A stretch of DNA of 64,000 nucleotides, taken from positions 1-64,000 of the IMG/VR virus record IMGVR_UViG_3300020442_000005. One strand, written 5' to 3'. Made by a program: the position numbers and the translations under genes. Numbering within the stretch: the stretch's first letter is position 1; the number at the start of each line of letters is the position of its first letter. Under the pieces are notes generated by a model, which ran no database searches, was not told the DNA's origin, and saw only the letters and a list, made by a program, of their open reading frames with translations. This document shows positions 3,963-61,874 of this stretch, in pieces.

Positions 3963-5360
3963 TTAAGTATCTTTCGGGTCCTCGTACCATTCTTCAATAA
4001 ATGACTCCCCTGTAAGCTCTTCAAGTTTGCGAATCATTTTCTCCATATTGATTCTTACAACTTTTCCAGTCCTAGTGTTCCTAGAAAAGTAATGCCACTC
4101 ACCTTCAGGATTGTGAGGTGATATTTGGGTCACGTTCTGTTGAGAATCACTAACAAATATCTCTGCGTGGCCGTTCACAAGCTTGGAGTATATTTGTGCA
4201 TGGTTGACAGTCAACGAAGGATCAGTTGTACCCTGGCAATTTAAGTGAAGATAATTAGAAATTGCAGCATCACCGGTAACATCCAGCTTGAAGTTCGGAG
4301 AAGTATTTCCTATTCCTATGTTACCATCAACCGTCAGGTTTGTGCTGTTTACGAGTTGTAAAGAGTCGTGTCTGAGTCGGGCTGTAATACCACTCGAGCC
4401 ATTCTTCATATTAGCAAACTCTATAATACCCTGTTCAGAACCGTCGGCGACAGAACCAATTTTCCCAGTTATCTTTGCGTAAGTCACATTTTGGTCAGCG
4501 TCGTTTTCACCTTGAAACTTAAGTTGGCCAAGATAGTCAGCGTTTGCTGGGGAAGAACTGTTTCTTTTTAGTTTGATGACAGGAGAAGCGCTACTTGAGT
4601 CTTCTGTTGTTTCTAAAAACAGCAGATCATCGGTCGTAGTGTTGTTCACGTGCAGTTGTGCGCTGTTAACTTTAACCTCATTCGGCCCTGAGCTCATTTT
4701 TTCTACTGTAAATAGATTAACCCCGCCAGCATCTAAATCGATTCTGTCATCCGTGAAATTAATTAACGTGTCGGTGTCACCGGTGTGCCTGATGTGTTGG
4801 TCAACGTATACGTTCCCTCCAAAAACAGCCGGTCCTGGAGATGTAAAAGCATCATTTGCATGGAGACTGCCTGATATGTATACAGAGCCACCAAACACTG
4901 CTTTGGCGTCAGTGGATCCAGATACGAAAAACACGACATCCGAAGGAAGAGCCTCAGCAGCTGCGGCAGTGTCGCTTTGACCATGTTCAAACTTTGCCTT
5001 ACCATCATCGTATATACGAAAGGGAAATTTTTGCGGATCACTACCAACGTTTGTTCTAGTTTTTAGGAAAAAATCTTGACTTCGTCCGGGAGATAGATAA
5101 ATGTTTTCTGCCTGGTCAAAAGCAAAAGATGCATACCAAGAGCTAGGATCGTCATCGTTTATAAATCTTAGAAAAGCGGTGTCCGGTTCTTTTTTAAATA
5201 TTGTAAGCCCGCCACCGCCCTCGGCATCGATGAACTGTGATCCTGTTACCACAAGTGCGTAATCTGAAGAATAACCATTACCATGGGCTGTGTTCCCGGT
5301 TACAATTGCGCCTTCACTAAACTTCATAGTGGCAGTGCCCATATTCTTTATTCTAGCCAT
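3963..5360 (-). CDS. Virion fibre-like beta-rich protein
   Basis: G/S/T/D-rich; shares FFVSGS..AVFGGSVYISGSL and HTGDTDTLINFTDDRI modules with 43876-49833; GIGNTSPNFKLDVTG fibre-type repeat. Confidence 0.7.
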   Translation of the reverse strand: MARIKNMGTATMKFSEGAIVTGNTAHGNGYSSDYALVVTGSQFIDAEGGGGLTIFKKEPDTAFLRFINDDDPSSWYASFAFDQAENIYLSPGRSQDFFLKTRTNVGSDPQKFPFRIYDDGKAKFEHGQSDTAAAAEALPSDVVFFVSGSTDAKAVFGGSVYISGSLHANDAFTSPGPAVFGGNVYVDQHIRHTGDTDTLINFTDDRIDLDAGGVNLFTVEKMSSGPNEVKVNSAQLHVNNTTTDDLLFLETTEDSSSASPVIKLKRNSSSPANADYLGQLKFQGENDADQNVTYAKITGKIGSVADGSEQGIIEFANMKNGSSGITARLRHDSLQLVNSTNLTVDGNIGIGNTSPNFKLDVTGDAAISNYLHLNCQGTTDPSLTVNHAQIYSKLVNGHAEIFVSDSQQNVTQISPHNPEGEWHYFSRNTRTGKVVRINMEKMIRKLEELTGESFIEEWYEDPKDT

Positions 5361-5480
5361 AAAATTGTACCTCCAAGTTCACCTACAACTTTTTACCCAA
5401 TTATATTTTTCTATTTATCATTAATTATGTATATTAGCGTGATAATTATATACATTCGTTCATATTTGTGGAGTTACTTT

Positions 5481-8108
5481 ATGTCTATACCAGACAGTAA
5501 AAAATTAAGAAAATATATAACGCAATTATTGAAAGAGCATATGCTACTCGAAGCCGCCGGTTCTATGGGTTTGGCAGCTGTACTTGCACGTGCCTTAGCC
5601 GACAAAATACTTGACGACGTCGATCGAATTGGCTTTGTATACATAGTTCAAAAACATAATGCACAATCGCGATGCAATATACCACTACTAGACGTCGTTG
5701 AAGATTTGGTGAAAAAAGACCAAGTTATAGCATTGAAAGTGCGTCCAAAGAAAAAGGAGTATAGCGTTATTGCTACTAGCTTCTCCAAGCGCATGTTGCC
5801 GAATGAGTTAGGCGCAGATAACGCAATTTTCGTGCAAAGCATAAGAAATCATGCATATCAGGATTACCCGGGCGATGCTATTGTATTGGGCAACGCTTAT
5901 TTTAACGATGTTAAAATCCCGGGATCGGGCGCGCATGGTTTAAGAAAGGAAGATTTAGACAAATTTGAAGCTATAGGGAATGATTTCCTTTCGAAGTACG
6001 TTAAATCCGCAGAGAATGAAAAGAAGATTCTCGAAGTGTTCGAATCCGTGGGCGCAGTTGGTTACTTTGCAGCTGCATTTATGGTATTTATAACCCAGGC
6101 CGAATCTGATGGCTCTCGTGGCCACGTATCCAGCTTATCGGCCACAAGCATGGGTGGAAAGCTAGTTATTGGTACCAATGCAATGACAGTTACAGCTGAG
6201 ACAACTGGCATATGGAATATGGGTATGTCATTTTTTTCGAATGATCAAATAGAACACATTAAAAAATCCATGGACTTACCTATCGGTCTTAACGTACCTA
6301 TAACAGTATCTCCAAAGCAGAGTTTTAATAATTTATCTAAACAAATGGTCGCATTTGACGAAAAGTTTCGTAGGATTATCGCTAGCAACACGACCTATAT
6401 ACACGAGTTGCAACACTTGATTCAACATGCCGGCTACCATACGCCATCTTCACAGTTAGATCCAGGCGCCGACGTCGACATAACCTCACCAACGCACCCG
6501 CTACATCCCTATAATGGTGACCCTCCAAACACTGCCGCAAGAGAAGCTGGTCTTGCGAAATCAAAAAGACCACCAGCCCAGCATATAAAGATTGTGTCTC
6601 AGATGCTAAAAGAACTGAACATAATAAAAGGTGAAGAAATAAAGATTTCCGGAATCAACAGCCCAGCATTCGAACTGGATGACGCAGCATTTTCATCCAC
6701 TACTATCGGGCTGTCGACAAGCATCTTTGTTAAAGAAAATGTATATCTAGAAGTGAACGTCGCCGATCACTTAAGTGATGTAGTTTTAAAACACATGTCG
6801 GATACGTATTTATCGGCACTTCCGTCAAAAAACATGTTTCCCGAGGAAAGAGAGGCTCAAATAAAAAGGTATGGTTCTGCAGCCGGGAAAAAATCGGTTG
6901 CAAGAAAATATCGTTTATTTCTAGCCGATATTCTTGCAGATATTGGAATATACACTTATCAAAAGTACATTTTTGATCGTACGGATCAAATAAAGGCTGA
7001 TATGGGGATTGGACCAAGAGATAAAACTATACCCGACGCATTAAAAGTCGCCTCTGAAAGGTTTCCGGACAGAACAGAAAAGGCGATCGAGCGTTTAAAT
7101 AAGTCTTTGTTAAATAAAGGCGGTAAACTATCAAAAGATTTAATCGAAAAAATGCGACCTGTATTTCCAACCATGGTTTTTTATTCGCGTAAATTGGGCG
7201 TTTTTATAGGTAAAGGTAAATACGGCCCACCCGGATGGATTAAGCAGCACCTATATATTGAATTCTTAGAAAATTATGATATAGACGAAGATCTATTGAA
7301 TGAGTTGAAAAAAGGGTCTGAAGACAGATATTATCTAAGTAAAAACCAAAAAGACCTAGGTCTCAGGTTATTAAAAGAGTTGGATTTAGTTTTGGTGATT
7401 GCACAGTCAGGTGCCGATACAGCTTTCATGGGTGAAGATGAAAGGCTTGAAGCAGAGGCCGGCCGGTCAGGCCGAGTAAGCCGAGGATATGCTTATTCAG
7501 GCTCACAATGGTATCAAAGGGCTAATGGATACACATGGCGAAGATTACAGACAGAATATGACGCTGAGTTTGTGACACAAACAGCTGGTTTTTTGTATGG
7601 CATCTATATACTAGGCACAGAGGACGATGCAACCGCAAATCGTATTTTAGCTCCAACGTATCTTATGGATTATTTTAGGCGATCTCCAAAGATTCAGCCT
7701 ATGATCGAGTTTTTGTTTGCATTGCTTGGAGAAGATATTACAAAGGTAATATCTGGTATAAAAAACTTTTCCAAGAAATCTAGACACAATTTCCAAGGAT
7801 TTATCGATCGCGATTTAGCAAAACAAAAGTCTGATCAGTACCGACGTTTGGCGATTGACATGATAGATAAGATTCAAAATATATCAGACGAAGAATTGAA
7901 TGACTTGCGAATAGATATAGCAAACAATAGCGTGGAAATGATATACGGTTCTAGAACAAAAAAAGCTACTCCAAAGCAAATCAATGATTTAACACCTGTA
8001 ATTAATGAATTTCTTGCAAGTGGAGGCTCGGTCGACCGCTTAACTCATTTACATGTAGAGACTGTAAAGGCTATAATAGGATTCGTTGGTAAAAAACTAT
8101 TGGAGTAA
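5481..8108 (+). CDS. Large hypothetical protein with HExxH motif (875 aa; start reassigned from 5283)
   Basis: GGAG RBS before ATG 5481; upstream extension is low-complexity intergenic DNA; YIHELQH at 6396-6416. Confidence 0.75.
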   Translation: MSIPDSKKLRKYITQLLKEHMLLEAAGSMGLAAVLARALADKILDDVDRIGFVYIVQKHNAQSRCNIPLLDVVEDLVKKDQVIALKVRPKKKEYSVIATSFSKRMLPNELGADNAIFVQSIRNHAYQDYPGDAIVLGNAYFNDVKIPGSGAHGLRKEDLDKFEAIGNDFLSKYVKSAENEKKILEVFESVGAVGYFAAAFMVFITQAESDGSRGHVSSLSATSMGGKLVIGTNAMTVTAETTGIWNMGMSFFSNDQIEHIKKSMDLPIGLNVPITVSPKQSFNNLSKQMVAFDEKFRRIIASNTTYIHELQHLIQHAGYHTPSSQLDPGADVDITSPTHPLHPYNGDPPNTAAREAGLAKSKRPPAQHIKIVSQMLKELNIIKGEEIKISGINSPAFELDDAAFSSTTIGLSTSIFVKENVYLEVNVADHLSDVVLKHMSDTYLSALPSKNMFPEEREAQIKRYGSAAGKKSVARKYRLFLADILADIGIYTYQKYIFDRTDQIKADMGIGPRDKTIPDALKVASERFPDRTEKAIERLNKSLLNKGGKLSKDLIEKMRPVFPTMVFYSRKLGVFIGKGKYGPPGWIKQHLYIEFLENYDIDEDLLNELKKGSEDRYYLSKNQKDLGLRLLKELDLVLVIAQSGADTAFMGEDERLEAEAGRSGRVSRGYAYSGSQWYQRANGYTWRRLQTEYDAEFVTQTAGFLYGIYILGTEDDATANRILAPTYLMDYFRRSPKIQPMIEFLFALLGEDITKVISGIKNFSKKSRHNFQGFIDRDLAKQKSDQYRRLAIDMIDKIQNISDEELNDLRIDIANNSVEMIYGSRTKKATPKQINDLTPVINEFLASGGSVDRLTHLHVETVKAIIGFVGKKLLE

Positions 8109-8110
8109 AC

Positions 8111-8374
8111 GTGGCGGATAAAAAAGATAAATGGGAAGATAATGTTGGTGGTTTTTCAATTGTAGCTGGAAAGAAAGTTTCTTTTTATGTTGATAAAGAG
8201 TGTATTTTGTGTTCAGTCTGCGAAGAGGTAGCGCCTTCCAATTTTAGAATGAACGATGACGACAGCCACGATATATGCTTTAAGCAGCCAGAAAACGAAC
8301 AGGAACTAGAAGAGTGTTATGAAGCGCTTGACAGTTGCCCGGTAGAGGCAATTGGTGACGATGACATCGAATAA
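8111..8374 (+). CDS. Single-cluster [4Fe-4S] ferredoxin
   Basis: CILCSVC (CxxCxxC) ... CPVEAI; GTG start with GGAG RBS. Confidence 0.9.
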   Translation: MADKKDKWEDNVGGFSIVAGKKVSFYVDKECILCSVCEEVAPSNFRMNDDDSHDICFKQPENEQELEECYEALDSCPVEAIGDDDIE

Positions 8375-8388
8375 AATGGCATAAATAT

Positions 8389-8417
8389 TTGTAAAGATAT
8401 ACATAGTTCTGTATTAT
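8389..8417 (+). promoter_or_regulatory. Sigma70-like promoter TTGTAA-N17-TATTAT
   Basis: Exact 17-nt spacing upstream of tk; same geometry recurs at 7 other sites. Confidence 0.7.
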
Positions 8418-8437
8418 TTATTTGCAAAGGAGCAAAA

Positions 8438-8995
8438 ATGAAACATGAATTTAGAATGTATGTCGGACCAATGTTCGGCGGCAAAACAACACGTATGTTA
8501 TCTCAACTTGAGCGATATGCATATATGGGTGAAGATGCGTTGATATTCAAGCCTAGGGTCGACGAAAGATACGAAACAGATTGGGTCTGTTCACATACTG
8601 GAGTTAAACGCCAAGCGCAGAGAGTTGAAACCGGTGCAGATATTCGTAAATGGGTTGCAACATATGTCGGCCGCACACCATCCGTGATTGCAATAGACGA
8701 AGCGTTCATGATACCAGGCGTAGGATTTGCTGCCATAACCTTGTTCAGAGAAGGTCATACGGTTCTTGTTTCTTCCTTGCAGTTGTCTTCCGATGGCACT
8801 CCATACGAGGAAGTGCAACGGATGTTTCCATACGCGACCTATGTTGCCGTATGCCCTGCTGTCGATCCAATTTCAAAGCAAGACGCTTACTATACCGAAA
8901 AATATGGTGGTAGGAAAGATCATGCAATCGAAGTTGGTGGCGCAGAAATGTATAGACCACGTGACTGGGAGGGTTTCTTTGGTAGTGATCGATGA
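8438..8995 (+). CDS. tdk: Thymidine kinase (type II)
   Basis: GPMFGGKTT Walker A, IAIDEA Walker B, lasso IEVGGAEMYRP. Confidence 0.92.
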   Translation: MKHEFRMYVGPMFGGKTTRMLSQLERYAYMGEDALIFKPRVDERYETDWVCSHTGVKRQAQRVETGADIRKWVATYVGRTPSVIAIDEAFMIPGVGFAAITLFREGHTVLVSSLQLSSDGTPYEEVQRMFPYATYVAVCPAVDPISKQDAYYTEKYGGRKDHAIEVGGAEMYRPRDWEGFFGSDR

Positions 8996-9007
8996 ATAAG
9001 TGAATAA

Positions 9008-9366
9008 GGGGCCGTAATGGCTTCGACGGGGTAGAATCAAGAGGAGTGTGCATGCAGGTAAGATACGACCTTAACAGTTCAAAACAAATAGTTGCAAACA
9101 ATAACGACAACTTCGAAGTAGCTTTAGCTGCATAATCGACGCCGGTGTCTCTTCCGGTGTGAAACAAGAGGCTTAGCCAGTTAGTCGAGGCAAACATATC
9201 AAGACTACAATGGTTATCCTGGTAACAGGTGGAATCTCCAGCCAGAGGGAGATTGGTGGAAAATTATTTGGCTAGTTTGTTAATTAACAACATAATTAAC
9301 TATGCATGTGAATGACACAAATTAAGACTGCTGCGGACGCGGGTTCGACTCCCGCCGGCTCCACCA
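9008..9366 (+). ncRNA. ssrA: tmRNA, tag reading frame ANNNDNFEVALAA* at 9094-9135
   Basis: 5' GGGGCCG pairs with 3' CGGCTCC-ACCA with a G3:U pair; T-arm GCGGGTTCGACTCCCGC; AAATAGTT before resume codon GCA; ALAA C-terminus. Confidence 0.96.
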
Positions 9367-9991: not shown

Positions 9992-10249
9992 ATGAAAATC
10001 ACAAGAAGACAATTGAAAAAAATCATTAAAGAAGAGAAAGCAAAACTTATACAAGAGGCACAGTACGGAGGCGGACAGTACGGTTTACGTAGTGATGACA
10101 GAGCCGGACAGCAAAAAGCAATTGAGATCGCATTAGCTCATTTGCAAATGCTTGATGACGCATTGTATGAAGCCGGCATTGAAGTTGGAATGGGTCAACT
10201 TAGAGGTATAGTGATGGATGCATTGAATCACCCAACATCCGGATATTAA
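9992..10249 (+). CDS. Leader-family protein (MKITRRQLKKIIKEE)
   Basis: GAGG RBS, shared leader. Confidence 0.85.
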   Translation: MKITRRQLKKIIKEEKAKLIQEAQYGGGQYGLRSDDRAGQQKAIEIALAHLQMLDDALYEAGIEVGMGQLRGIVMDALNHPTSGY

Positions 10250-10557
10250 TGATGAAAATCACAAAAAGACAACTTCGAAGAATTATTAAGGAAGAAAAAT
10301 CAAAGATTATGTCGGAGGCTTTTGGAAGTCCATCCGGCAAAGATTTTGGCTTATATGATCAGATTCAAGAAAAACTTGAATATGAACTATTGATTAATAT
10401 TCAAAGTCAAATATTAAATACTCTTCCTCCTGCAATTCGTCGTACCATTGATTTAGGAACAGAAGCAGAGATGATGGGCTTTGATGATTTAATGGAACAA
10501 GTCCGAGAATGGTTTGAGAATTATGTATCGGCGATGACAGATCTGGATCGGAGATAA
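10249..10557 (+). CDS. Leader-family protein (MMKITKRQLRRIIKEE)
   Basis: TAATG coupling, shared leader. Confidence 0.85.
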   Translation: MMKITKRQLRRIIKEEKSKIMSEAFGSPSGKDFGLYDQIQEKLEYELLINIQSQILNTLPPAIRRTIDLGTEAEMMGFDDLMEQVREWFENYVSAMTDLDRR

Positions 10558-10560
10558 ACA

Positions 10561-10980
10561 ATGAAATTAACAAAAAGACAACTTCGAAGAATTATTCGTG
10601 AAGAAAAGAAAAGATTGATCAAAGAAAGCTCTATGGAGTTGTCATATCAATACGCAGAGCAATTGCTGCAAGATGCCGCCCGTGAATTAGCCGATAATTT
10701 TAGCGAGGGTCAATTAGGCAATGGTGCGCATGACGCCAAAATGAACGGCGAAAATGCGCTCTATGAATTACTGACTCTAGCTGCAATGAGAACAAGAGGG
10801 TTAATAGAACATAAGAAAAAAGCAAATTTGCTCAACGAGTATATTGATCGCGATTATCTCTTAGATCGTCTCATGGAGGTACTCATTGAAGAAGGCGCAG
10901 TTAAACCGGGGCCGGGTGCGCGTGATGATGCTTTACAATACTTAGGTTTCTTAGTCAAGGTATATGACAGAGGCAGATAA
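10561..10980 (+). CDS. Leader-family protein (MKLTKRQLRRIIREE)
   Basis: GGAG RBS, shared leader. Confidence 0.85.
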   Translation: MKLTKRQLRRIIREEKKRLIKESSMELSYQYAEQLLQDAARELADNFSEGQLGNGAHDAKMNGENALYELLTLAAMRTRGLIEHKKKANLLNEYIDRDYLLDRLMEVLIEEGAVKPGPGARDDALQYLGFLVKVYDRGR

Positions 10981-10981
10981 A

Positions 10982-11533
10982 GTGAAGATAACTAGAAAAC
11001 AACTAAGACTAATTTTAGAGACAGCTGCTAAGCAAAAAGATAAAGAGGCTGTGTTTTCAATTATATACACTTCGGCATATGTCCAAGAATATATGGAAGA
11101 TCTTTATAATGCCATATGGTCCTCTTTTGAAAATCGCGGCGAACAAGATGATTATAAGATTGTTAATGTACTTGAAGATCTAACTAGCATGCTTACAAGA
11201 CCGGTCATGGACTTGGGATCTGAATACAGCCTATACACAAAAGAATTGGATGCTGCTGATGATGAGGGAATAGAATTCGAAGCCGGCAATGCCGAAAAGT
11301 TCGATTTCGAGGAAAGTGTTTATCTGGGAATAGAGAATATTAATCGCTTTATTAACGAACAGACTCCGATGGGAATGAGCGCGCTTGAAGCATTAAGGCA
11401 TGTTAAAGATCGTAAGATCAATATCGGATTGATTAAAAGAACTACAGATTTTTTACTTTCTCTAATGGATGATGATAGAGTCTTATCTGTTCTTGACCAA
11501 ATCGATTATGAGTATCAGAGGATGAAGATGTGA
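10982..11533 (+). CDS. Leader-family acidic protein (GTG start: MKITRKQLRLILET)
   Basis: GTG 2 nt after the previous stop, GAGG 8 nt upstream; the ORF track start 10964 is in the same frame. Confidence 0.8.
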   Translation: MKITRKQLRLILETAAKQKDKEAVFSIIYTSAYVQEYMEDLYNAIWSSFENRGEQDDYKIVNVLEDLTSMLTRPVMDLGSEYSLYTKELDAADDEGIEFEAGNAEKFDFEESVYLGIENINRFINEQTPMGMSALEALRHVKDRKINIGLIKRTTDFLLSLMDDDRVLSVLDQIDYEYQRMKM

Positions 11534-12450
11534 TCACTAACGGTAACGTACTTTATATATTTGATTTCGATGATACTTTAGCAATGACTAATAGCGCAGT
11601 TCGCGTTATTAGCGCGTCAGGCCAGGTAAAAAGACTTGATAGCAGAGAGTTTGCTAAATATCGATATCAAGCAGGTGATCAACTAGACTTTTCAGAGTTT
11701 ACTCGAGCTGAAGGAACATTGATCGATAACACAGTACAAGAGATGCAAGAAGCAATTTCCCGGTACGGGATAGAAAATGTCTTTATTGTAACAGCCCGGG
11801 CTGAAGATGAGCCTGTGTTTAACTTTTTAGACTCTTTTGGGCTGGTTGTGCCTCAGGTGATCGCAACAGAAGGTTCAGCCGGAAAAGCACCATGGCTAAC
11901 AAAAACCCTTCTTTTGGGAAATTACGACAAAGTGATCGTTTATGAAGACTGTCGTAAAAACATAAAAATGCTCAGAGATGTTGTAGAAGCCTACAACGAA
12001 GAATTAAATAGAGAAGTACTGTACAGTGCAGTATGCATTTTACCGGATGGTAGACAACAAATGATTGAATCAAGAATTAGAAGGTTTGTAAGAAAAATTA
12101 TTCTAACAGAAGGAGTTAGAAATACAACTCAAGGCGCAAATGCGATTATAAACGTCATGTTGGATAATCCAGACTATAGTATTCGGAATGCTGCAGCTGA
12201 CGTATTTTGGAACTTTGAACAGCTTGGAAACCGCCGAGCTGCTCGATTTCATAGGGCTTCTATGGATAGGGTCGGCGAACAGATACAAAAACGGCTAGCG
12301 AAGACTGGAGCTGATCCACATAATCAACCAGAAGGGTTTGTGTATACGCCAGAAGAAAAAGCGCTAGTCGATCTATACCATAGCCGGGTTCCTACGAATC
12401 AACACGGTGAGTACGGCATTAAACTGGCTGATTGGAGAAAATTTAGATGA
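11530..12450 (+). CDS. HAD-superfamily phosphatase-like protein with C-terminal extra domain
   Basis: FDFDDTL (DxD motif I), IVTAR motif II, GK..W, YEDC..N motif IV. Confidence 0.8.
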   Translation: MITNGNVLYIFDFDDTLAMTNSAVRVISASGQVKRLDSREFAKYRYQAGDQLDFSEFTRAEGTLIDNTVQEMQEAISRYGIENVFIVTARAEDEPVFNFLDSFGLVVPQVIATEGSAGKAPWLTKTLLLGNYDKVIVYEDCRKNIKMLRDVVEAYNEELNREVLYSAVCILPDGRQQMIESRIRRFVRKIILTEGVRNTTQGANAIINVMLDNPDYSIRNAAADVFWNFEQLGNRRAARFHRASMDRVGEQIQKRLAKTGADPHNQPEGFVYTPEEKALVDLYHSRVPTNQHGEYGIKLADWRKFR

Positions 12451-13457
12451 GAGCAAAAAAAGGCGAATGGTTTAGTTTGTCTTGGGATATAAATGATAAG
12501 TATGATCCAATAGCTTGGGAACAGTTTAAAAATTGCCCTAGATTTCTTTATGCCGAAGAAAATAGTAATCAGGTTGAAGGAAAAATAATTAATGAGTTTG
12601 ATAGACTTAGGCTTACTAGTATTTTTCTTACTTCAATGTTTCTTAAAAACGAAGACGGTCTTAAAGTACCCACTCATTACAGAGTAGGAATATTTATGCC
12701 TGGAGACAACACAGCCTATGATAAGTGGATAAAGGAATACCACAGATTGAATCACGAGGTAACAGAGCAAATCCGTGCTAAGGAAATGTTACAACAAAAA
12801 AGTATATACCTAGAGCATGCTGCTAGAATCATCAGGCATGATATGCATTCAGGAATAAATACCTACATTCCTCGAGGTTTAAAATCACTGCTAGATAAAC
12901 TGCCGGAAGAGGTAATCAAAGAGCACCGTCTAGAGCTAAGCATTAAATTATTGGAAGAGGGCTTGAATCACGCTCAAAAAGTATACCAAGGAGTGTACGC
13001 ATTTACGAATCTAGTAAAAGACAAGTCTCAGATAGAGAAACAAAAACATAACATCAAAGACATCCTGGTTGAACATTTTAGTTCGAACGCTTACGGTCAT
13101 CTAATTGACATACAGGACATGGGTGATTTCTATGTTAATAAATCACTTTTTTGTACAGCTATTGAAAATTTTGCAAAGAACGGTTTAGCATACAACGATT
13201 CAGGTCCAGACAGAAAGGTTAGAATTTACAGCAGATATGTAGATGAAATAACAATTGCTGATAACGGCCGCGGATTAAGTCAACAGGAATACGATTATCA
13301 AACAATGCCTTTCTTGAGAGAAGAAACAAACAATGTGAATCAAATAACTGGATTGGGCATAAATATAGCTAACGCCATCCTAGTAGAACATGGCTTTAAA
13401 GTGTCAGTCGATGAACTTGAACACGGCACTGCAATTCGAATCACGATGAAAAATTAG
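12447..13457 (+). CDS. Soluble sensor histidine kinase
   Basis: RHDMHSG H-box, ENFAKNG N-box, DNGRG G1, GLGINI G2. Confidence 0.88.
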   Translation: MRAKKGEWFSLSWDINDKYDPIAWEQFKNCPRFLYAEENSNQVEGKIINEFDRLRLTSIFLTSMFLKNEDGLKVPTHYRVGIFMPGDNTAYDKWIKEYHRLNHEVTEQIRAKEMLQQKSIYLEHAARIIRHDMHSGINTYIPRGLKSLLDKLPEEVIKEHRLELSIKLLEEGLNHAQKVYQGVYAFTNLVKDKSQIEKQKHNIKDILVEHFSSNAYGHLIDIQDMGDFYVNKSLFCTAIENFAKNGLAYNDSGPDRKVRIYSRYVDEITIADNGRGLSQQEYDYQTMPFLREETNNVNQITGLGINIANAILVEHGFKVSVDELEHGTAIRITMKN

Positions 13458-13466
13458 GCCAAAAAA

Positions 13467-14744
13467 ATGTTAACAAAAAGATCCAAAGCGTGTTTAACCA
13501 TTTCGCTGTCCGTGATGGCAGGATTTTTTATTGAGCAAACTCTGGTTATTTCTGGTTTTGTTTTGCCATCATACTTCTCTGCTCTTTTTGGATACGCATG
13601 CACTATTTTGTTTACTGTGTCTTTTATATGTTTTGCAATCGATTTTTTATATACAGTAAAATCAAAAAAGCAAATTTATGATGACAAGTTAGCAGCGATC
13701 CATACGTCTAACATGGTTGCAATATATGATAACGAGGGCTTGATAATTTCAGCAAACCAAAATTTTTGTGATACTACCGGTTACAGCAACTCTGAGCTCG
13801 TTGGTTCAACCCACTGCATGGTTATGCCAAGAGAATTGATTAGATCAGAAGAGTACAGATCATTTTGGGAACAATTGAACCGGGGCATTTTCCTTAGAGG
13901 TAAATATAGACGACGAAAAAAATGTGGCAACGACTATTGGTGTTATGCAACATACAGCCCCATTCGCAACGGATCTGGAAAAGTTTATCAAATAATCGAA
14001 ATATCGTCGGACGTCACAGAAGAATATTTAGCCCAACAAGAACTTGCTCACAAAAACATATACCTAGAACACGCAGCCAAAATTTTAAGACACGACATGC
14101 ATTCCGGTATAAACACGTATATCCCGCGCGGAATTCGTAGTCTAGAAAGACGAATTAATCAAGATGTCATCGATGAGTTACATATTGAGTCACCTTTAAA
14201 ACTTATAAAGGAAGGCCTTCTACATGCACAGAGGGTTTACAGAGGGGTTTATGAATTCACAAACCTGGTAAAAAAAGATGCAGAAATGCAAAGATCAAAA
14301 TATGATCTTAAATCAATCTTGGAAGAATACATATCTAAAACAGCGTACGCTGACCAAGTTATTATTGAAGAGTTGATTAATCTTGAGGTTAATGAGGCGT
14401 TATTCTGTACTGCAATAGATAACTTGATCAGAAATGGATTAAAATACAACGATTCAGTGTCAAAACTTGTAAGAGTAAAAATGCACGACCAGTCTCATAT
14501 TGCGGTAGAAGACAACGGCCGCGGATTATCTCAGAAAGAATTCGAAGAGTTTTGCAAGCCTTACCAACGCAAAAAAGGTCAAAAGGAACCGGGTTCTGGC
14601 CTGGGATTAAATATATCAGTCGCAATATTTAATGAGCATGGCTTTAGAATGTCGATTGATGAATTGCAACAGGGAACAAGGATTCTTATTCAACTAAACG
14701 AAGATTATCTAGATGATTGCACATTGATAAGAAATTTAAAATAA
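13467..14744 (+). CDS. Membrane PAS/PAC sensor histidine kinase
   Basis: 2 TM; PAS ANQNFCDTTGYSNSELVG..H..FW..L..G; PAC YW..ATYSPI..SDVTE; HDMHSG, DNLIRNG, EDNGRG, GSGLGL. Confidence 0.93.
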   Translation: MLTKRSKACLTISLSVMAGFFIEQTLVISGFVLPSYFSALFGYACTILFTVSFICFAIDFLYTVKSKKQIYDDKLAAIHTSNMVAIYDNEGLIISANQNFCDTTGYSNSELVGSTHCMVMPRELIRSEEYRSFWEQLNRGIFLRGKYRRRKKCGNDYWCYATYSPIRNGSGKVYQIIEISSDVTEEYLAQQELAHKNIYLEHAAKILRHDMHSGINTYIPRGIRSLERRINQDVIDELHIESPLKLIKEGLLHAQRVYRGVYEFTNLVKKDAEMQRSKYDLKSILEEYISKTAYADQVIIEELINLEVNEALFCTAIDNLIRNGLKYNDSVSKLVRVKMHDQSHIAVEDNGRGLSQKEFEEFCKPYQRKKGQKEPGSGLGLNISVAIFNEHGFRMSIDELQQGTRILIQLNEDYLDDCTLIRNLK

Positions 14745-14785
14745 TTTCATATATTTATATTCGTGGATCTTTGTTGGAGTTTGTA

Positions 14786-15217
14786 ATGATAAAGTCGATA
14801 CTTTTAGTTGATGATGAAAATTTATTTCATCTTGTTTTTGAAGATGCTTGTAGCCTGCTTGATATAACCTTGGATCTGCGCAGCATTACATCATCAGATG
14901 CTGCAGCAAAACTTTTTGCCGAGTGGCAAAACGACCCAAAAGGCAAACCAGAATGTGTTTTCGTTGATTTAAATATCATAGGATCATCATTTGATGGTAT
15001 TGAACTTATTAAAAAAATTAACTATGAATATGGCAATGGCGTTGTTGTTGGAATCATATCATCTTCTGCTGACCAAGCCGAGATAGAAAAATCAAAACTG
15101 GCAGGATCCCAATTTTGGATTATTAAATCAGATGATATCGAACCCAGATTAGAACTTTTTAAGAACGATTATGCTGGATATAAAAACCGCACTAACGAGT
15201 TCAAAGTATATCGATGA
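14786..15217 (+). CDS. Single-domain response regulator (CheY/Rcp-like; start reassigned from 14717)
   Basis: ILLVDDE acidic pocket, VFVDLN phosphoacceptor, DGIELIKKI, ISSS, IIKS; GGAG RBS. Confidence 0.92.
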   Translation: MIKSILLVDDENLFHLVFEDACSLLDITLDLRSITSSDAAAKLFAEWQNDPKGKPECVFVDLNIIGSSFDGIELIKKINYEYGNGVVVGIISSSADQAEIEKSKLAGSQFWIIKSDDIEPRLELFKNDYAGYKNRTNEFKVYR

Positions 15218-15810
15218 AACTTACAAAAGAAATAGAGGATTCTTTTATTGCTTTATTAGAGGATCGTGGTGTACAACTAGAAGGAAACATTTTAAAGCTA
15301 ATAAAGACTGATAATCCAGAATTTAAAAAATACATCGACAACGCCAAAGAAGCCGATGCTAAAGCAAGAAGAGATAGACTTGCAATAACTAAACAAGTTC
15401 AATCTCAAATGCAAGATCTAGAACTAAAAAAAACTCAGTTAGAAGAAAAAGCAGTCGAAAACGAAGACCTTTTAAAAAATTTAGAAGAAGCGCTTGAAGC
15501 TGCTGAGGGTGCAAAAAAGGCTGCAATAGACGATCTAGATCTACTACAAAAGAAAACTCAGTTTGAACTAATAGGAAACATTGTAAACGTTGCCCTTTGG
15601 GTCATCATGGCAGTAGGCGTTACAACGACTGTTCTTTACGTTGTGGCACTTTTTCTAAATGGAAATGGTCCGGACACAACTCTGATTGGCAATACATGGT
15701 CAAATTTGCTTGGTATATTATTGACAAATTCTTTTTCTATAATTGGCACAATTATGGGCGTCAAATATGCAAGTGAAACGACTCCAAAAAAACCGGGTGA
15801 ATCTGTGTAA
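15214..15810 (+). CDS. Coiled-coil protein with two C-terminal TM helices
   Basis: Heptad-rich AKEADAKARR..LEEALEAAEG; two hydrophobic helices; ATGA-coupled to the receiver gene. Confidence 0.8.
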   Translation: MKLTKEIEDSFIALLEDRGVQLEGNILKLIKTDNPEFKKYIDNAKEADAKARRDRLAITKQVQSQMQDLELKKTQLEEKAVENEDLLKNLEEALEAAEGAKKAAIDDLDLLQKKTQFELIGNIVNVALWVIMAVGVTTTVLYVVALFLNGNGPDTTLIGNTWSNLLGILLTNSFSIIGTIMGVKYASETTPKKPGESV

Positions 15811-18198: not shown

Positions 18199-18654
18199 AT
18201 GTCTAATCTTATTAAAAAAACTTATTTCGGATCTACATATCCAAATACTATTTACTCTGATTTTGATTCTATTTTTACGCCTTTCATGAGGCAGTTTACA
18301 CGTAATGACAATAAATTCTACCAAACAGTTCCCCGCGCGAATGTTTACTATCGTGACAACGAAGGTTATTCTGTAGAGATGGCAGTACCTGGATTTGCTC
18401 GAGAAGACTTCAATCTCGACATTGAAAATGGTACGCTCACCGTTTCACTAAATGGAAAAGTGGAAGATACCGAGTCTGAAAACGATAGCATCAGACAGAG
18501 AGAGTGGTCGTATTCAACATTTAAACGTTCATTCTCGCTGCCAGATAATACTAATCTAGATGGTATTACTGCACGATATGATGCTGGTATTCTATATATC
18601 CAAGTACCAGTTGAAGACAATCAAAACCGTCGAACAAGAATCACTGTCGATTAA
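18199..18654 (+). CDS. Small heat-shock protein Hsp20/alpha-crystallin
   Basis: EMAVPGF.REDFNLDIENGTLTV, FKRSFSLPD, ARYDAGILYI; AGGAG RBS. Confidence 0.95.
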   Translation: MSNLIKKTYFGSTYPNTIYSDFDSIFTPFMRQFTRNDNKFYQTVPRANVYYRDNEGYSVEMAVPGFAREDFNLDIENGTLTVSLNGKVEDTESENDSIRQREWSYSTFKRSFSLPDNTNLDGITARYDAGILYIQVPVEDNQNRRTRITVD

Positions 18655-18685: not shown

Positions 18686-18712
18686 AAATGCCCGGTTTTC
18701 CGGGCATTTTTT
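18686..18712 (+). terminator. Rho-independent terminator
   Basis: AAATGCCCGG-TTTT-CCGGGCATTT followed by a T run. Confidence 0.9.
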
Positions 18713-22122: not shown

Positions 22123-23223
22123 ATGTCAGCAAAAAACCCGATCACTATTGCAACTTTCAATGTAGTTGCTCCAAATCTTCCGGCCTCTATTGCAGTTCTG
22201 ATGCGAGGACCAACTGGTGTTGGTAAATCACATCTAGCAAAACAGATCGCCGATCACCATGGCCTCCCGTTCATCGATGTCCGCGGTTCTACAATGTCTG
22301 AAGGTGACGTTGGCGGCTATCCCGACATCGAGTCAATGAAAGAGTCTGGTATCATGACGTTCTGTATGCCATCTTGGTTTGTCCGCGCTTGCAACGAACC
22401 AGTTGTTCTTATGCTTGACGAGTTGAATCGCTCTCTTCCAGGTGTTCAACAAGCATTCTTCCAGATTGTTCTTGACCGCGAGCTCGGTAACGATAAGAAT
22501 GGTAAGCCATACCGTTTGCATCCAGATACTCGAGTTATTGCTGCCATCAACTTCGGTTCTGAATACGACGTCAACGAAATGGACCCCGCTCTTCTTCGTC
22601 GATTTTGGGTAGCTGACATCGAGCCATCTACTGAAGACTGGCTGTCTTGGGCCGGTAACAATGACATCGACCCAGTGATGATGGACTTTATTCGCCAAAA
22701 TCCTGCTCATCTCCGTGTTGATCCTTCAACTGTTGAGCCTGGTACAGTCTGTCCAAACCCTGCATCTTGGGACCGTCTCAATCAAGCATTGACTCACATG
22801 AATATGAGTCCAACATCGGTTGCCGGCGCGCCGCGGCCTGATGGGATATATGCATTGTCTATGGGTATGGTTGGTACAGAAGCCGCTATTGCATTTTGCG
22901 CTTTCATGGAAAACTATGCTCGCCAAATCTCTGCAGAAGATGTTCTAGATGGTAAGGTTACAAAAGAAGTCATCAAAGATGCTCAAGTGTCAATGATGAA
23001 CAGTGTCATTGCGAAAGTATCAGAACACTCAAAAACAAATCAGTGGACTAAAAAGCAGGCTCGTAACGTTGCTGACTTCATGGAAGCATTGCCTGGTGAA
23101 ATGATGGTTGACCAGTGGAACAAAATCACTGAATCTCAGAACATCGCAAACATTCAGGTTATGCACAAACTCATCGGTCAAAAAATCGTTGAAGCTGTTA
23201 AGAAAAGCCGACAACTCAACTAA
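22123..23223 (+). CDS. MoxR-like AAA+ ATPase
   Basis: GPTGVGKS Walker A, LMLDELNR Walker B, DPALLRRF arginine finger. Confidence 0.9.
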   Translation: MSAKNPITIATFNVVAPNLPASIAVLMRGPTGVGKSHLAKQIADHHGLPFIDVRGSTMSEGDVGGYPDIESMKESGIMTFCMPSWFVRACNEPVVLMLDELNRSLPGVQQAFFQIVLDRELGNDKNGKPYRLHPDTRVIAAINFGSEYDVNEMDPALLRRFWVADIEPSTEDWLSWAGNNDIDPVMMDFIRQNPAHLRVDPSTVEPGTVCPNPASWDRLNQALTHMNMSPTSVAGAPRPDGIYALSMGMVGTEAAIAFCAFMENYARQISAEDVLDGKVTKEVIKDAQVSMMNSVIAKVSEHSKTNQWTKKQARNVADFMEALPGEMMVDQWNKITESQNIANIQVMHKLIGQKIVEAVKKSRQLN

Positions 23224-23228
23224 GTTGG

Positions 23229-23260
23229 ATGGGGGAGGCTAGTCCTCCCCCATTGTGTTT
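23229..23260 (+). terminator. Hairpin terminator
   Basis: ATGGGGGAGG-CTAGT-CCTCCCCCAT then TGTGTTT. Confidence 0.75.
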
Positions 23261-23274
23261 ATTGGAGAATACAT

Positions 23275-23547
23275 ATGGACAGAATATACAAAGGTGATTT
23301 AGTCATGGTGAAATCAACGCAGCAATTTGGTATTGTTGTTGAGATCGTCCGACGATCACCTCAAAACCCTGATTGGGATTTGATTTGTGTTCATTATGAC
23401 GGAAGTATTGACGAGGTGAGTCCTCGTACACTTACAAAAAATGTAAATAAATTCGTAAAATCTGTGAAAGACGTAGAAAAAGTGGATAAATTAAGTATGT
23501 ACCTAGCAAAAAGGAGTGAATATGTCAAAGAAAGAAACCGGAAATGA
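23275..23547 (+). CDS. Small KOW/SH3-like hypothetical protein
   Basis: YKGDLVMV..FGIVVEI; GGAG RBS. Confidence 0.65.
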   Translation: MDRIYKGDLVMVKSTQQFGIVVEIVRRSPQNPDWDLICVHYDGSIDEVSPRTLTKNVNKFVKSVKDVEKVDKLSMYLAKRSEYVKERNRK

Positions 23548-24931
23548 GGCATTAGTCTCGCGAGAAGTTTCTGCTGAAGAAGTCAGCAATTTCAAACTTG
23601 ATGAGTATATTATTCGTCTTATGTGGAAAGAGCCATTCTTTGCAGAGATTTTTAGAATTATGAAGAAAAAATCCACGGATCGCATTCCAACAGCCGGCGT
23701 GTTTATTCAAGACGGCGAAATGCATCTTTGGTACAATCCAAAGTTCATGGCCGGCCTAACAAATGCTCAGATTATTGGTTTGCTTAAGCACGAGTGTTAT
23801 CACTTAATCTATCAGCATACAACAAAGAGGCGACACAAGCCGCACATCATCTGGAATTATGCAACTGATCTTGCAATCAACTCATTGATTGATGAAAACG
23901 AGCTGCCTGAAGGCGGACTTATTCCAGGTAAAGCATTCTCTGCACTCACTCCTGAACAAAAGCAACAAATGGGTCCAAAGGCCGCTGAGCGTTACGAAAT
24001 GATTTCGGCCAAGATTGCAAGTTTTCCAAAGTTTGAATATTCTGAATGGTACTTTGCGCAGCTAATGGATGACGAAGACGTCAAACAAGCGATCGAATCT
24101 TCCGAGGCTATGGGCGGCAAATCACTTAGTGAGGCTCTAGCCGATGGCGACGTTATGATCGATGAAGACGGTAATCTGATCGATGCTGACGGCAACCCGG
24201 TAACAGTTGTCCCAGGTGCCGGTGCTGAAGGTTCTATGGATTCGCATGAAGGCTGGGATGAGCTAACTGACGAGCAGCGTGACGCTGTAAAGGCAACCGT
24301 TCAAAAGGCAATCGAAGACGGCGTCAACAAATGCAACCAATCTAATAAGTGGGGTTCTGTTAGTACAGAGATGCAGCAAGAGTTGAGAAAAATGATTTCA
24401 AAAGAAATCCCATGGCAGTCAGTGCTCAAACAGTTCTGCGGTATGACAAGAAGAGCTGACAGAACATCTTCAGTGCGCCGACTGAATCGTAAGTATCCTG
24501 CTATTCATCCAGGTACTCGTCGAAACTACAGGGCATCGATCGCTGTTTATCTGGATCAATCAGGTTCTGTTTCTGACAGCGACTTAGAAATGTTGTCCGG
24601 TGAGCTGGAAAGCCTTGCAAGCCGAGTTGAGTTTACGTTATTCAACTTTGACACTAGTGTTGATGAGGCATCTGAGAGAACTATCAAGCAGCGTTCGGCT
24701 GTCAGCCTGAACAGAACAAGATGCGGTGGAACTGATTTTCAATGCGTACAAAACCATGCCAACAAAAATGCAAAAAGATTTGATGGCTATCTGGTTCTAA
24801 CTGATGGTTTTGCCCCCGCCACGACCGGCCACAACAAACTGAAAAGAGGTTGGGTGATTGTACCGAACGGCGAGTTACAGTTTGCAAAACCTGGACGTGA
24901 CTTTGAAATCAAAATGCAAGGCAACCAATAA
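23522..24931 (+). CDS. DUF2201-type metallopeptidase-like plus vWA protein
   Basis: HECYH (HExxH), N.A.DLAIN, acidic linker, LDQSGS MIDAS, GGTDF, LTDG; AAGGAG RBS. Confidence 0.88.
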   Translation: MSKKETGNEALVSREVSAEEVSNFKLDEYIIRLMWKEPFFAEIFRIMKKKSTDRIPTAGVFIQDGEMHLWYNPKFMAGLTNAQIIGLLKHECYHLIYQHTTKRRHKPHIIWNYATDLAINSLIDENELPEGGLIPGKAFSALTPEQKQQMGPKAAERYEMISAKIASFPKFEYSEWYFAQLMDDEDVKQAIESSEAMGGKSLSEALADGDVMIDEDGNLIDADGNPVTVVPGAGAEGSMDSHEGWDELTDEQRDAVKATVQKAIEDGVNKCNQSNKWGSVSTEMQQELRKMISKEIPWQSVLKQFCGMTRRADRTSSVRRLNRKYPAIHPGTRRNYRASIAVYLDQSGSVSDSDLEMLSGELESLASRVEFTLFNFDTSVDEASERTIKQRSAVSLNRTRCGGTDFQCVQNHANKNAKRFDGYLVLTDGFAPATTGHNKLKRGWVIVPNGELQFAKPGRDFEIKMQGNQ

Positions 24932-35454: not shown

Positions 35455-35704
35455 AGAATCGACATTAGTAAGATTTGGATGGTATTACAGAAACAAACCC
35501 ATTCCGGATGATGAGACAAAAATAATTGGAGTGGTTTTAGATTCTCCAGAATGGAGATATTTTAGATACGAGAAGTTAAGTTTTTCAAAAGGAAAATGGT
35601 GTATTATTGAAAAAGAAGAGAACACATTAGTTGTTTGCGTTTATACACTGCATGGTGAGTTTGTATACTATCCATTATATAATTTGATAAAGGTTGAGGA
35701 ATGA
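35360..35704 (+). CDS. Small hypothetical protein inserted between yeaH and spoVR (true start uncertain)
   Basis: Fills the 35455-35708 gap; aromatic-rich. Confidence 0.55.
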   Translation: MTKYIQSNQHSSIQKKTSGRPSKSFLEKHPVKESTLVRFGWYYRNKPIPDDETKIIGVVLDSPEWRYFRYEKLSFSKGKWCIIEKEENTLVVCVYTLHGEFVYYPLYNLIKVEE

Positions 35705-35708
35705 AAAA

Positions 35709-36992: not shown

Positions 36993-37003
36993 GGGAGCAA
37001 ATA

Positions 37004-52568: not shown

Positions 52569-52577
52569 TAGGTAGAC

Positions 52578-57086: not shown

Positions 57087-57095
57087 GAGAGACAC

Positions 57096-59257: not shown

Positions 59258-59260
59258 ACG

Positions 59261-59935: not shown

Positions 59936-59956
59936 TCACGCGTTAGGAGTAAATAA

Positions 59957-61183: not shown

Positions 61184-61198
61184 ACGTAAGGGTTGAAT

Positions 61199-61864: not shown

Positions 61865-61874
61865 TGGGGATTAA

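Follow-up and report, generated by a model that had tools for sequence, protein, structure and literature searches.

A phage-encoded set of predicted sensor kinases, receiver and virus-only membrane protein that recurs in hundreds of viral contigs

We analysed a 64,000-nucleotide stretch of DNA (the window), which equals the first 64 kb of the 273-kb IMG/VR viral contig IMGVR_UViG_3300020442_000005 from a large uncultivated marine phage. Four contiguous, intact genes lie on the plus strand: the histidine kinase HK1 (12447-13457, 336 aa), the membrane-anchored PAS histidine kinase HK2 (13467-14744, 425 aa), a single-domain response regulator (14786-15217, 143 aa) and a coiled-coil protein with two transmembrane (TM) segments (15214-15810, 198 aa). 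The open reading frame of the receiver spans 14717-15217, but the real start is the ATG at 14786, which lies behind a GGAG. ATGA overlaps are present at 12447-12450, between the upstream gene and HK1, and at 15214-15217, between the receiver and the 2-TM protein, whereas HK1 and HK2 are 9 nt apart and HK2 and the receiver 41 nt apart. The original prediction, that the phage carries a complete two-component cassette with all motifs intact, is confirmed as an observation, with two corrections: the start of the receiver, and the presence in the kinase described as merely soluble of a conserved N-terminal domain.

Both kinases contain an ATP-binding domain that scores above the Pfam cut-off for HATPase_c (HK1, 40.9 bits, 3e-10; HK2, 49.6 bits, 6e-13), and HATPase_c is present in 90 of 90 relatives. 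The H box RHDMHSGIN, the N box DNLIRNGLKYN, G1 (DNGRG) and G2 (G[ST]GLGL) are found in both kinases and are invariant in 124 and 90 relatives. By analogy to the HisKA motif H-E-L-R-T-P-L, the phospho-acceptor is inferred to be His131 in HK1 (12837-12839), which is invariant in 90 kinases, and His209 in HK2 (14091-14093; N box at 14415-14450, G1 at 14511-14528 and G2 at 14592-14612). The AlphaFold2 model of HK1 (pLDDT 89.6) has a helical hairpin at residues 103-190 and matches the DHp-CA regions of ZraS, HK853 and CpxA with a Foldseek probability of 1.00. However, Pfam HisKA models match none of the 90 kinases, so this is a divergent DHp subfamily.

Hydropathy analysis shows no TM segment in HK1 or the receiver, and HK1 is assigned as cytoplasmic. 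Residues 1-100 of HK1 (12447-12746) form a putative sensor domain of no known family: it has no Pfam hit, is confidently modelled as beta-alpha-beta-alpha-beta3-alpha, and is conserved in about 10 clusters at 50% identity with the motifs WFSLxW, CPRF and PTHYRxGxFMPGD. The domain is also present in five of the related loci (L002, L011, L014, L044 and L054). HK2 begins with a TM hairpin (aa 10-65, 13494-13661) that has a loop of about 3 residues and positive residues flanking both ends, so there is no periplasmic sensor domain and the PAS domain (aa 80-190, 13704-14036; PAS_3/PAS_9, 2e-13) is cytoplasmic.

The best solved matches to this PAS domain are the FAD-binding redox sensors MmoS PAS-A (3EWK, 2.9e-21), Aer (8DIK, 2.9e-9) and NifL (TIGR02938, 3.5e-18, far below its cut-off), and a sequence relationship to this family is therefore present. 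The flavin-pocket residues named for Aer (T18, H53, N85 and R115) and MmoS (T103, H132, N164 and R195) (PMC9668731) map to Y87, H116, R149 and S180 in HK2. Only the His is kept: across 124 relatives the four positions are F/Y/L, H, R (121 of 124) and A/S, although the Trp is conserved as well. Flavin binding is therefore doubtful, and the redox-sensing role of the Aer/BdlA type that had been proposed for this domain is not supported.

Against Pfam Response_reg (PF00072) the receiver, searched as the long open reading frame, scores 27.2 bits, just under the cut-off of 30.2. All listed relatives carry a precomputed PF00072 assignment, as do 91-98% of the members of near-identical ESM Atlas clusters, and the family profile matches the closest solved receiver, 3ilh, at 7e-7. 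An Atlas model, which represents a near-identical cluster rather than the window protein itself (feature score 0.99, pTM 0.90), superposes on NarL- and NtrC-type receivers at TM 0.76-0.79. The acidic pair D9 and D10, the predicted phospho-acceptor D61 (14966-14968), S92, K114 and the aromatic switch residue W111 are invariant in 16 diverse sequences, and a C-terminal tail, GYxxRTxxFKVY, is conserved. The resemblance to Rcp-type regulators suggested in the original prediction remains a suggestion.

The fourth protein matches no Pfam family, and a fold search with Foldseek found nothing. Its N-terminal domain and the start of the coiled coil (aa 1-95) occupy 15214-15498. The two TM segments (aa 117-148 and 160-186; 15562-15771) comprise TM1 (15562-15657) and TM2 (15691-15771), the latter with the near-invariant sequence WSNLxGILLTNSFSIIGTIMGVKYA, and are followed by a short Lys/Glu-rich tail. 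The ESM Atlas clusters for both the receiver and this partner protein are 100% viral.

The same gene set is found in at least 468 viral contigs, far beyond chance. In all 80 IMG/VR loci examined, one or more kinases are followed by the receiver and the 2-TM protein on one strand, while the flanks are otherwise unrelated. The partner is not strictly obligatory, because the loci L005 and L006 carry kinase and receiver without it. At least 4,917 homologues of HK2, 3,829 clusters of the receiver and 3,872 clusters of the partner were found. Selection is strongly purifying: between the window and L002, dN/dS is 0.016 for the receiver and 0.06 for the partner, with dS saturated for the kinases, and a strain variant in other samples has 34 synonymous and 6 non-synonymous changes, none of the latter in the receiver. 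The condition set beforehand as refuting a phage cassette, a recent bacterial insertion with motifs decaying in relatives, is thus contradicted.

The inputs vary, whereas the kinase core, receiver and membrane protein stay constant. Of 90 kinases, 57 have PAS and 8 have GAF domains and the rest have other or no recognised sensors, yet the DHp helix after the His is identical in all of them. Receiver helix 1 is also invariant, and the mean column identity of the receiver is 79%.

The closest cellular system is an uncharacterised chromosomal module of Bacteroidota (locus L013, MAG contig CANIVF010000058.1), in which a triple-PAS kinase is followed by a 143-aa receiver and a kinase with the N-domain, HisKA and HATPase_c. 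The kinase core has the same RHDMHSGIN H box and is about 49% identical to HK2, and the receiver is 66% identical to that of the window and scores 44.2 bits against PF00072. The third gene overlaps the receiver gene by one base and encodes a protein that begins with the same N-terminal domain and coiled coil as the phage partner over its first 90 residues (hhalign probability 99.1, E 5e-19), but then carries HisKA and HATPase_c instead of the TM hairpin. The surroundings are cellular (T9SS cargo proteins, CreD). The phage module probably shares ancestry with this system, with no direction of transfer implied. The domain swap points to the third protein as the target of the receiver, and we propose its N-terminal domain as the receiver-binding input.

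Lysis genes are frequent neighbours in relatives. A GH19 endolysin, a second endolysin-like family or a Phage_holin_4_1 gene lies within 6 kb of the module in 41 of 87 loci; among loci with full flanks the count is 21 of 41, against at most 8.3 expected, although these loci are not phylogenetically independent and the null model is crude. In 3 loci the endolysin directly follows the partner gene. No recognised lysis gene lies in the 64-kb window. The partner has two TM helices, small-residue spacing in TM2 (G167-T171-S175-G178-G182) and a short charged tail, which may parallel class II (2-TM) holins and the pinholin S21. However, it has no match among the Pfam and PHROG holin families, is larger than typical holins and has a 115-residue cytoplasmic N-terminal extension. 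Regulation of holins by phosphorylation has not been described, to our knowledge; in phage T4, lysis inhibition acts through the RI antiholin and the T holin, and a signal-dependent delay of lysis is the idea that we borrow here.

We hypothesize, with moderate confidence, that the cassette is a genuine, functional phage-encoded phosphorelay of a large family found almost entirely on viral contigs. In this view, HK2, through its membrane-tethered PAS domain, and HK1, through its novel N-domain, would autophosphorylate on the His of the unusual H box and pass the phosphate to Asp61 of the one stand-alone receiver. The phosphorylated receiver would then act by direct contact on the N-terminal cytoplasmic domain of the partner and change what its TM hairpin does in the host inner membrane. 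The most likely output would be control of membrane permeabilisation, that is, lysis timing of a holin- or antiholin-like kind, set by the physiological state of the infected cell. The integrity and conservation of the genes, their fixed order, the variable inputs with constant receiver and partner, the domain swap in the cellular homologue and the lysis-gene neighbourhood in relatives are direct results of our analysis. By contrast, autophosphorylation and phosphotransfer, the contact between receiver and partner, the signal sensed, any hole formation and the role in lysis are inferred from sequence, without biochemical or expression evidence (no RNA run was listed).

The interpretation in the original prediction is thus partly supported. 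Relay through protein-protein contact fits a receiver that has no output domain and is followed by the same partner, and lysis timing gains indirect support from the neighbourhoods in relatives. We found no evidence for a link to host motility signalling, and the cellular relatives found are in Bacteroidota. Single-domain receivers that act by binding a downstream protein also occur in the CheA-CheY, Cph1-Rcp1 and DivJ/PleC-DivK pathways, the last acting on DivL/CckA, and the cellular homologue has the receiver-to-second-kinase logic of DivK-DivL. There are, however, no chemotaxis, phytochrome or cell-cycle genes nearby, the DHp is not recognised by Pfam HisKA models, and the partner is a virus-only membrane protein. 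Among other viruses that carry signal-reception genes, the arbitrium (AimR/AimP) and VP882 VqmA-Phi systems are peptide- or autoinducer-binding transcription factors rather than His-Asp phosphorelays, and the hybrid histidine kinases of the phaeovirus EsV-1 belong to a eukaryotic virus that infects brown algae. Full-text literature searches, mostly directed at phage-encoded kinases, revealed no paper describing a phage module of kinase, receiver and membrane partner.

Several alternatives are less likely. The best of them is host hijack by mimicry, in which the phage kinases and receiver plug into the host's own relay, the receiver drives or blocks the host kinase that carries the same N-domain, and the 2-TM protein serves as a membrane decoy or sink for phosphorylated host or phage receiver, so that the real output would be host gene expression and not the membrane. 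The existence of cellular homologues with the same receiver (61-69% identical) and the same N-domain is in agreement with this model, and the extreme conservation of the receiver would fit a conserved host target. However, only two cellular loci were found in 185,579 species genomes, albeit with a strict pattern scan, and the near-invariant TM2 argues for a function of the partner in the membrane rather than a passive decoy.

It is also conceivable, but unlikely, that the cassette is an inter-phage conflict module, in which the kinases detect a competing or superinfecting phage or another stress and the receiver triggers the 2-TM protein to depolarise the cell or exclude the competitor. The layout of sensor, relay and small TM effector resembles that of bacterial defence systems with TM effectors, and the module sits in variable accessory neighbourhoods. 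On the other hand, it is near-universal and fixed across very different viral contigs, unlike patchy defence islands, and PAS and GAF sensors suggest small-molecule or metabolic cues. Slightly less likely still, the kinases could act mainly on host response regulators, as kinases or phosphatases, to reprogram host transcription, with the phage receiver only a phosphate sink or buffer. Cross-talk and sink receivers occur in bacterial systems, and kinase copy number and sensors vary while the core is constant. Yet a mere sink would not be expected to be the most conserved component, nor to be translationally coupled to a co-conserved partner, and the identical docking helix of the kinase paralogues together with the invariant receiver helix 1 points to a dedicated pair.

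That the locus is mis-assembled, mis-classified or very recently inserted cellular DNA is largely refuted: although a 99%-identical protein is filed under a Balneolaceae MAG and seven MAG contigs carry the receiver, those MAGs span five phyla, as expected for mis-binned phage contigs, several carry the virus-only partner or window-like phage genes, the neighbours include endolysin, holin and crAss-muzzle genes, a syntenic 242-kb relative from another study has the same cassette at 80% identity, a single 19-kb contig and independent samples span the region at 12-16 kb, and the window itself has uniform GC, dense co-directional genes and phage-family helicase, PhoH and PrkA genes.

Many phages therefore appear to carry their own signalling circuit, possibly one that times lysis. 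We speculate, tentatively, that a very abundant and diverse set of aquatic, mostly marine phages, probably infecting Bacteroidota, uses interchangeable intracellular sensors that converge on one receiver gating a dedicated membrane protein, so that the virus decides when to permeabilise or lyse the cell according to the physiological state of the host. If so, this would be the first phosphorelay-controlled lysis or membrane switch in viruses, and a virus-specific output class for two-component signalling.

Four contiguous ORFs on the + strand make up the cassette, which lies in a window identical to the first 64 kb of the 273,025-bp contig IMGVR_UViG_3300020442_000005. The first histidine kinase, HK1 (12447-13457, 336 aa), has a HATPase_c domain and no transmembrane (TM) segment. 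The second, HK2 (13467-14744, 425 aa), has an N-terminal TM hairpin (aa 10-65) with essentially no loop, so that its PAS domain (aa 80-190) is cytoplasmic, and a kinase core follows. The receiver ORF is listed from a TTG at 14717, but the plausible start is ATG 14786, located behind a GGAG, which gives a protein of 143 aa, the length of all relatives. The fourth protein (15214-15810, 198 aa), hereafter the partner, has no family and is modelled as a short N-terminal helical region, one long helix (35-149) that runs into TM1, and a return helix (153-188) that forms TM2. A fold search with this model was uninformative (best E 4.4). ATGA overlaps join the upstream gene to HK1 and the receiver to the partner gene, and the H, N, G1 and G2 boxes of the kinases as well as D9, D10, D61, S92 and K114 of the receiver are all present. 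The original prediction of a complete and intact two-component cassette at this position is confirmed, with a corrected start of the receiver. A promoter and terminator scan found nothing above background inside the cassette, and a search for RNA runs with which to assess expression listed none.

The surroundings of the cassette are those of a phage. Genes are dense and almost all on the + strand, and the GC content is an even 35-43% across the region. Matches to phage families include a DNA helicase (phrog_2488, 2e-115; best GenBank relatives are jumbo and Ackermannviridae-type phages), PhoH, PrkA, a DUF2201 metallopeptidase and an AAA ATPase, whereas a DNA similarity search with 11.5-16 kb found no match among GenBank phages. 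About 3 kb upstream of the cassette lies a phage-encoded one-piece tmRNA gene (9008-9366, +; Rfam RF00023, 114.7 bits), for which ARAGORN gives the tag peptide ANNNDNFEVALAA; the tag could not be tied to a host group. Between the tmRNA gene and the cassette, at 9992-11533 (+), there are four tandem small genes (85, 102, 139 and 189 aa) whose products share only an N-terminal motif, MK(I/L)T(K/R)RQL(K/R)RII(K/R)EEK, and look like a paralogous family. An ORF of 151 aa at 18199-18654 (+) reads, from its sequence alone, like a small heat-shock protein of the alpha-crystallin type, and is followed by the only strong terminator-like hairpin of the region (18686-18709).

Further from the cassette, an AAA (MoxR-like) ATPase is found next to a DUF2201 metallopeptidase/VWA-like protein (22123-24931, +), a pair that is also conserved in a related 242-kb contig (L002). 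A second signalling set (34294-38929, +) contains a PrkA/YeaG-type AAA serine kinase (37004-38929, Pfam 4e-136), preceded by two genes matching phrog_19072 and phrog_35217. The + strand also carries a serine hydroxymethyltransferase (30197-31357; 6e-136), a PIN-PhoH fusion (41860-43218), and a long run of glycosyltransferase, B12-radical-SAM and unannotated genes (49913-63116) that may form a glycan or modification cluster. Two large ORFs, of 1,985 aa (43876-49833, +) and 941 aa (5283-8108, +), have no PHROG hit, and the 941-aa ORF has no Pfam hit either.

The cassette is a conserved viral module and not a stray bacterial insert. HK2 has more than 4,900 homologues of the same architecture, mostly from marine metagenomes. 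The receiver has 3,829 clusters at 90% identity, of which the top 120 are 73-92% identical and 141-159 aa long (mostly 143-144), and the partner has 3,872 clusters; the near-equal numbers fit one-to-one co-occurrence. ESM Atlas labels the nearest receiver and partner clusters ‘Viruses 100%, Uroviricota’. A scan of IMG/VR with the receiver alignment confirmed at least 468 viral contigs of 4 to 430 kb. In all 80 loci fetched, the receiver is followed on the same strand by the 2-TM partner, with a gap of about 60 nt or less in 76 loci and of 500-800 nt in four, and a kinase core lies immediately upstream wherever upstream sequence exists. When the ORFs of 87 loci were clustered, only three families were universal: the receiver (87), the partner (85) and the kinase (83, the four missing being cut by contig ends), whereas the next most common family reached only 30 loci. 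One natural exception, loci L005 (10001-12405) and L006, has a GAF-PAS-PAS kinase and a receiver but no partner, and a guanylate-kinase gene on the opposite strand follows instead; the close relative L007 has the partner. Flanking genes of the window are not shared with most loci. The upstream ATGA-coupled gene (306 aa, HAD-like) and the downstream 690-aa gene were considered as additional components and rejected, because they are not conserved with the module outside close relatives. The 242-kb contig L002, which comes from another study, carries the same four genes (336/425/143/197 aa) at 80-96% identity, with syntenic flanks.

In 185,579 GTDB species genomes only seven loci appeared, all in MAGs, from five phyla. 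Four of them (L009, L010, L011 and L014) carry the virus-only partner, and L009 also carries window-like phage genes, including homologues of the PrkA-type kinase and its two preceding genes near the module, so these look like mis-binned phage. A fifth (L015) is a 2-kb fragment, and the remaining two (L012 and L013) are cellular. Searches (tblastn) with HK2 and with the receiver against 50,697 GenBank phage records gave only three weak partial kinase hits and no receiver hit. At least one carrier of the module is crAss-like, as a protein of 1,578 aa with a crAss-type muzzle C-terminal domain (PF25729) lies 7 kb from the module in locus L008 (18206-21233), which is consistent with Bacteroidota hosts. 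The probable source sample of the window also holds short contigs from other phages, which match only the conserved 5' part of the receiver gene (14798-14868) and diverge on both sides, so several module-bearing phages co-occur in one sample.

Selection on the module is strongly purifying. Between the window and L002, synonymous sites are saturated for the kinases (dN 0.12-0.14), and dN/dS is 0.016 for the receiver and 0.06 for the partner. Contigs from independent marine samples hold the cassette, and one strain variant differs by a 1-nt deletion in the HK1-HK2 spacer and, among the 40 listed substitutions, by 34 synonymous and 6 non-synonymous changes, none of the latter in the receiver. Every catalytic motif is invariant in the 124 HK2-type and 90 mixed kinases aligned. 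In a separate alignment of HK1-type kinases, however, some relatives (P0392, P0393 and P0397) have a degenerate G2 box (for example GFDSIEMNIA, NGQLDFNIA); these may have lost ATP-lid function and could act as phosphatases or pseudokinases, whereas HK1 of the window keeps TGLGIN. The refuting condition set in the original prediction, a recent bacterial insertion with decaying motifs in relatives, is contradicted by the invariance of the catalytic motifs in the 124 and 90 kinases.

The kinases share a core but differ in their N-termini. All 90 kinases scanned have HATPase_c; PAS domains occur in 57 and GAF in 8, and the rest have other N-termini, including the N-domain of HK1. None of the 90 matches Pfam HisKA. 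A single-sequence HMMER search of 1.84 billion representatives with HK1 found only 813 hits at E <= 1e-3 and 75 at E <= 1e-30, and the kinase core is therefore a small, divergent subfamily. The N-domain of HK1 (aa 1-100) is conserved in about ten clusters at 50% identity and is confidently modelled as a beta-alpha-beta-alpha-beta3-alpha unit, while the rest of the HK1 model superposes on the DHp-CA of ZraS, HK853 and CpxA. About 20 loci carry two kinases. On a kinase-core tree the HK1-type cores form one clade (support 100), and a second set of non-PAS kinases forms another (support 95). The DHp helix after the His (HDMHSGINTY-PRG) is identical in all paralogues, and receiver helix 1 (LFHLVFEDxCSLL) is invariant. 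These are the regions known to set kinase-receiver specificity, and we infer that several sensors feed one receiver.

The PAS domain of HK2 most closely matches, among solved structures, MmoS PAS-A (3EWK, 2.9e-21) and Aer (8DIK, 2.9e-9), and NifL is the best NCBIfam PAS match. The flavin-pocket residues named for Aer are T18, H53, N85 and R115, corresponding to T103, H132, N164 and R195 in MmoS (PMC9668731). In the HMMER alignment to 3EWK these map to Y87, H116, R149 and S180, and across 124 relatives the positions are F/Y/L, H (123 of 124), R (121 of 124) and A/S, so that only the His is kept. The domain has its own, nearly invariant set of residues (H116, W134, R149, K152) and thus probably binds something, but the Aer-like FAD redox sensor of the original prediction is not supported.

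The two cellular loci hint at what the receiver acts on. L012 lies on a 967-kb Bacteroidetes contig among TauE, SoxA-type cytochrome c, TetR, ABC1 and GFO genes, and has a multi-PAS kinase and a receiver 61% identical to that of the window, but no partner. L013 is a Bacteroidetes contig with two T9SS-tail proteins, CHU_C Ig domains and CreD, and holds a three-gene relay (5709-9090) that appears uncharacterised: a triple-PAS kinase with the same H box, a 143-aa receiver and, overlapping the receiver gene by one base, a gene for a 349-aa protein. Residues 2-90 of this protein match the N-terminal region of the phage partner (hhalign probability 99.1%, E 5e-19, 39% identity), and the rest is HisKA and HATPase_c; an Atlas search with the protein returned only generic kinases, dominated by its C-terminal part. 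The same N-domain and coiled coil therefore follow the same receiver in both settings, with two different outputs, a kinase in the bacterium and a TM hairpin in phages. This is the strongest available indication that the receiver signals to the N-domain, which is thereby a candidate receiver-binding domain, but it remains an inference. The two cellular kinases group together (support 95), but the tree, with a midpoint root, support of 83-84 and long branches, does not resolve whether the cellular pair is ancestral or derived, or who donated to whom.

The most conserved part of the partner is TM2 (WSN-x-x-G-I-L-L-T-N-S-F-S-I-I-G-T-I-M-G-V-K-Y), which is almost unchanged in 84 of 85 loci, while the rest of the protein is 41-65% identical to that of the window. 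It has small or polar residues every three to four positions and a short charged tail. In the neighbourhoods of the module, a PG_binding_1 + GH19 endolysin (phrog_181, 1.7e-68) occurs in 30 loci, a second endolysin-like family in 11 and a Phage_holin_4_1 protein in 10, together in 41 of 87 loci. Among the 41 loci with full 6-kb flanks, 21 have such a gene, whereas at most 8.3 would be expected if a single lysis locus were placed at random on a genome no shorter than the contig, and 0 of 200,000 simulations reached 21. The loci are related to one another, however, and the null model is crude; moreover, the partner matches no holin family, and no lysis gene was recognised in the 64-kb window.

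We hypothesize, with modest confidence, that the output of the module is phosphorelay-controlled membrane permeabilisation or lysis timing. The interpretation in the original prediction, a phage that senses host redox or energy state and relays it by protein contact, for example to lysis timing or to host motility signalling, is partly supported, with no evidence for the link to motility. The presence, conservation and intact motifs of the module follow from the sequence analysis, whereas signalling through the relay, the convergence of several sensors on one receiver, the action of the receiver on the N-domain and the membrane output are inferred. Hijacking of a host relay, an inter-phage conflict function and, as the weakest, cross-talk to host regulators are the rival explanations.

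The components themselves are ordinary two-component parts, with two marginal details: the DHp lies outside the Pfam HisKA models, and the receiver of the window scores marginally below the Pfam cut-off. What is new is the residence of the module in a very large set of viral contigs, the layout in which many sensors would feed one receiver, and the virus-only 2-TM partner that shares its proposed input domain with a Bacteroidota kinase. Full-text literature searches, most of them aimed at phage-encoded histidine kinases, found no description of the module, although this does not prove that none exists. A survey of jumbo phages mentions only a divergent receiver linked to NAD+ systems, which is stated never to be found with histidine kinases (PMC7824862).

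Two-component systems are regarded as cellular equipment, and phage decision-making is known mainly from repressors, peptide (arbitrium) or autoinducer receptors, and the T4 lysis-inhibition system. Here, a complete kinase-receiver pair with a virus-only membrane partner is conserved across thousands of sequence variants, and is nevertheless absent from the deposited phage genomes searched. If the module works as proposed, it would offer a compact set of sensor, relay and membrane effector for study, and would define an uncharacterised receiver-binding domain shared with Bacteroidota kinases. Lytic environmental phages would then read host physiology through modular sensors and adjust a membrane event, which would affect how latent period and burst size respond to ocean conditions.
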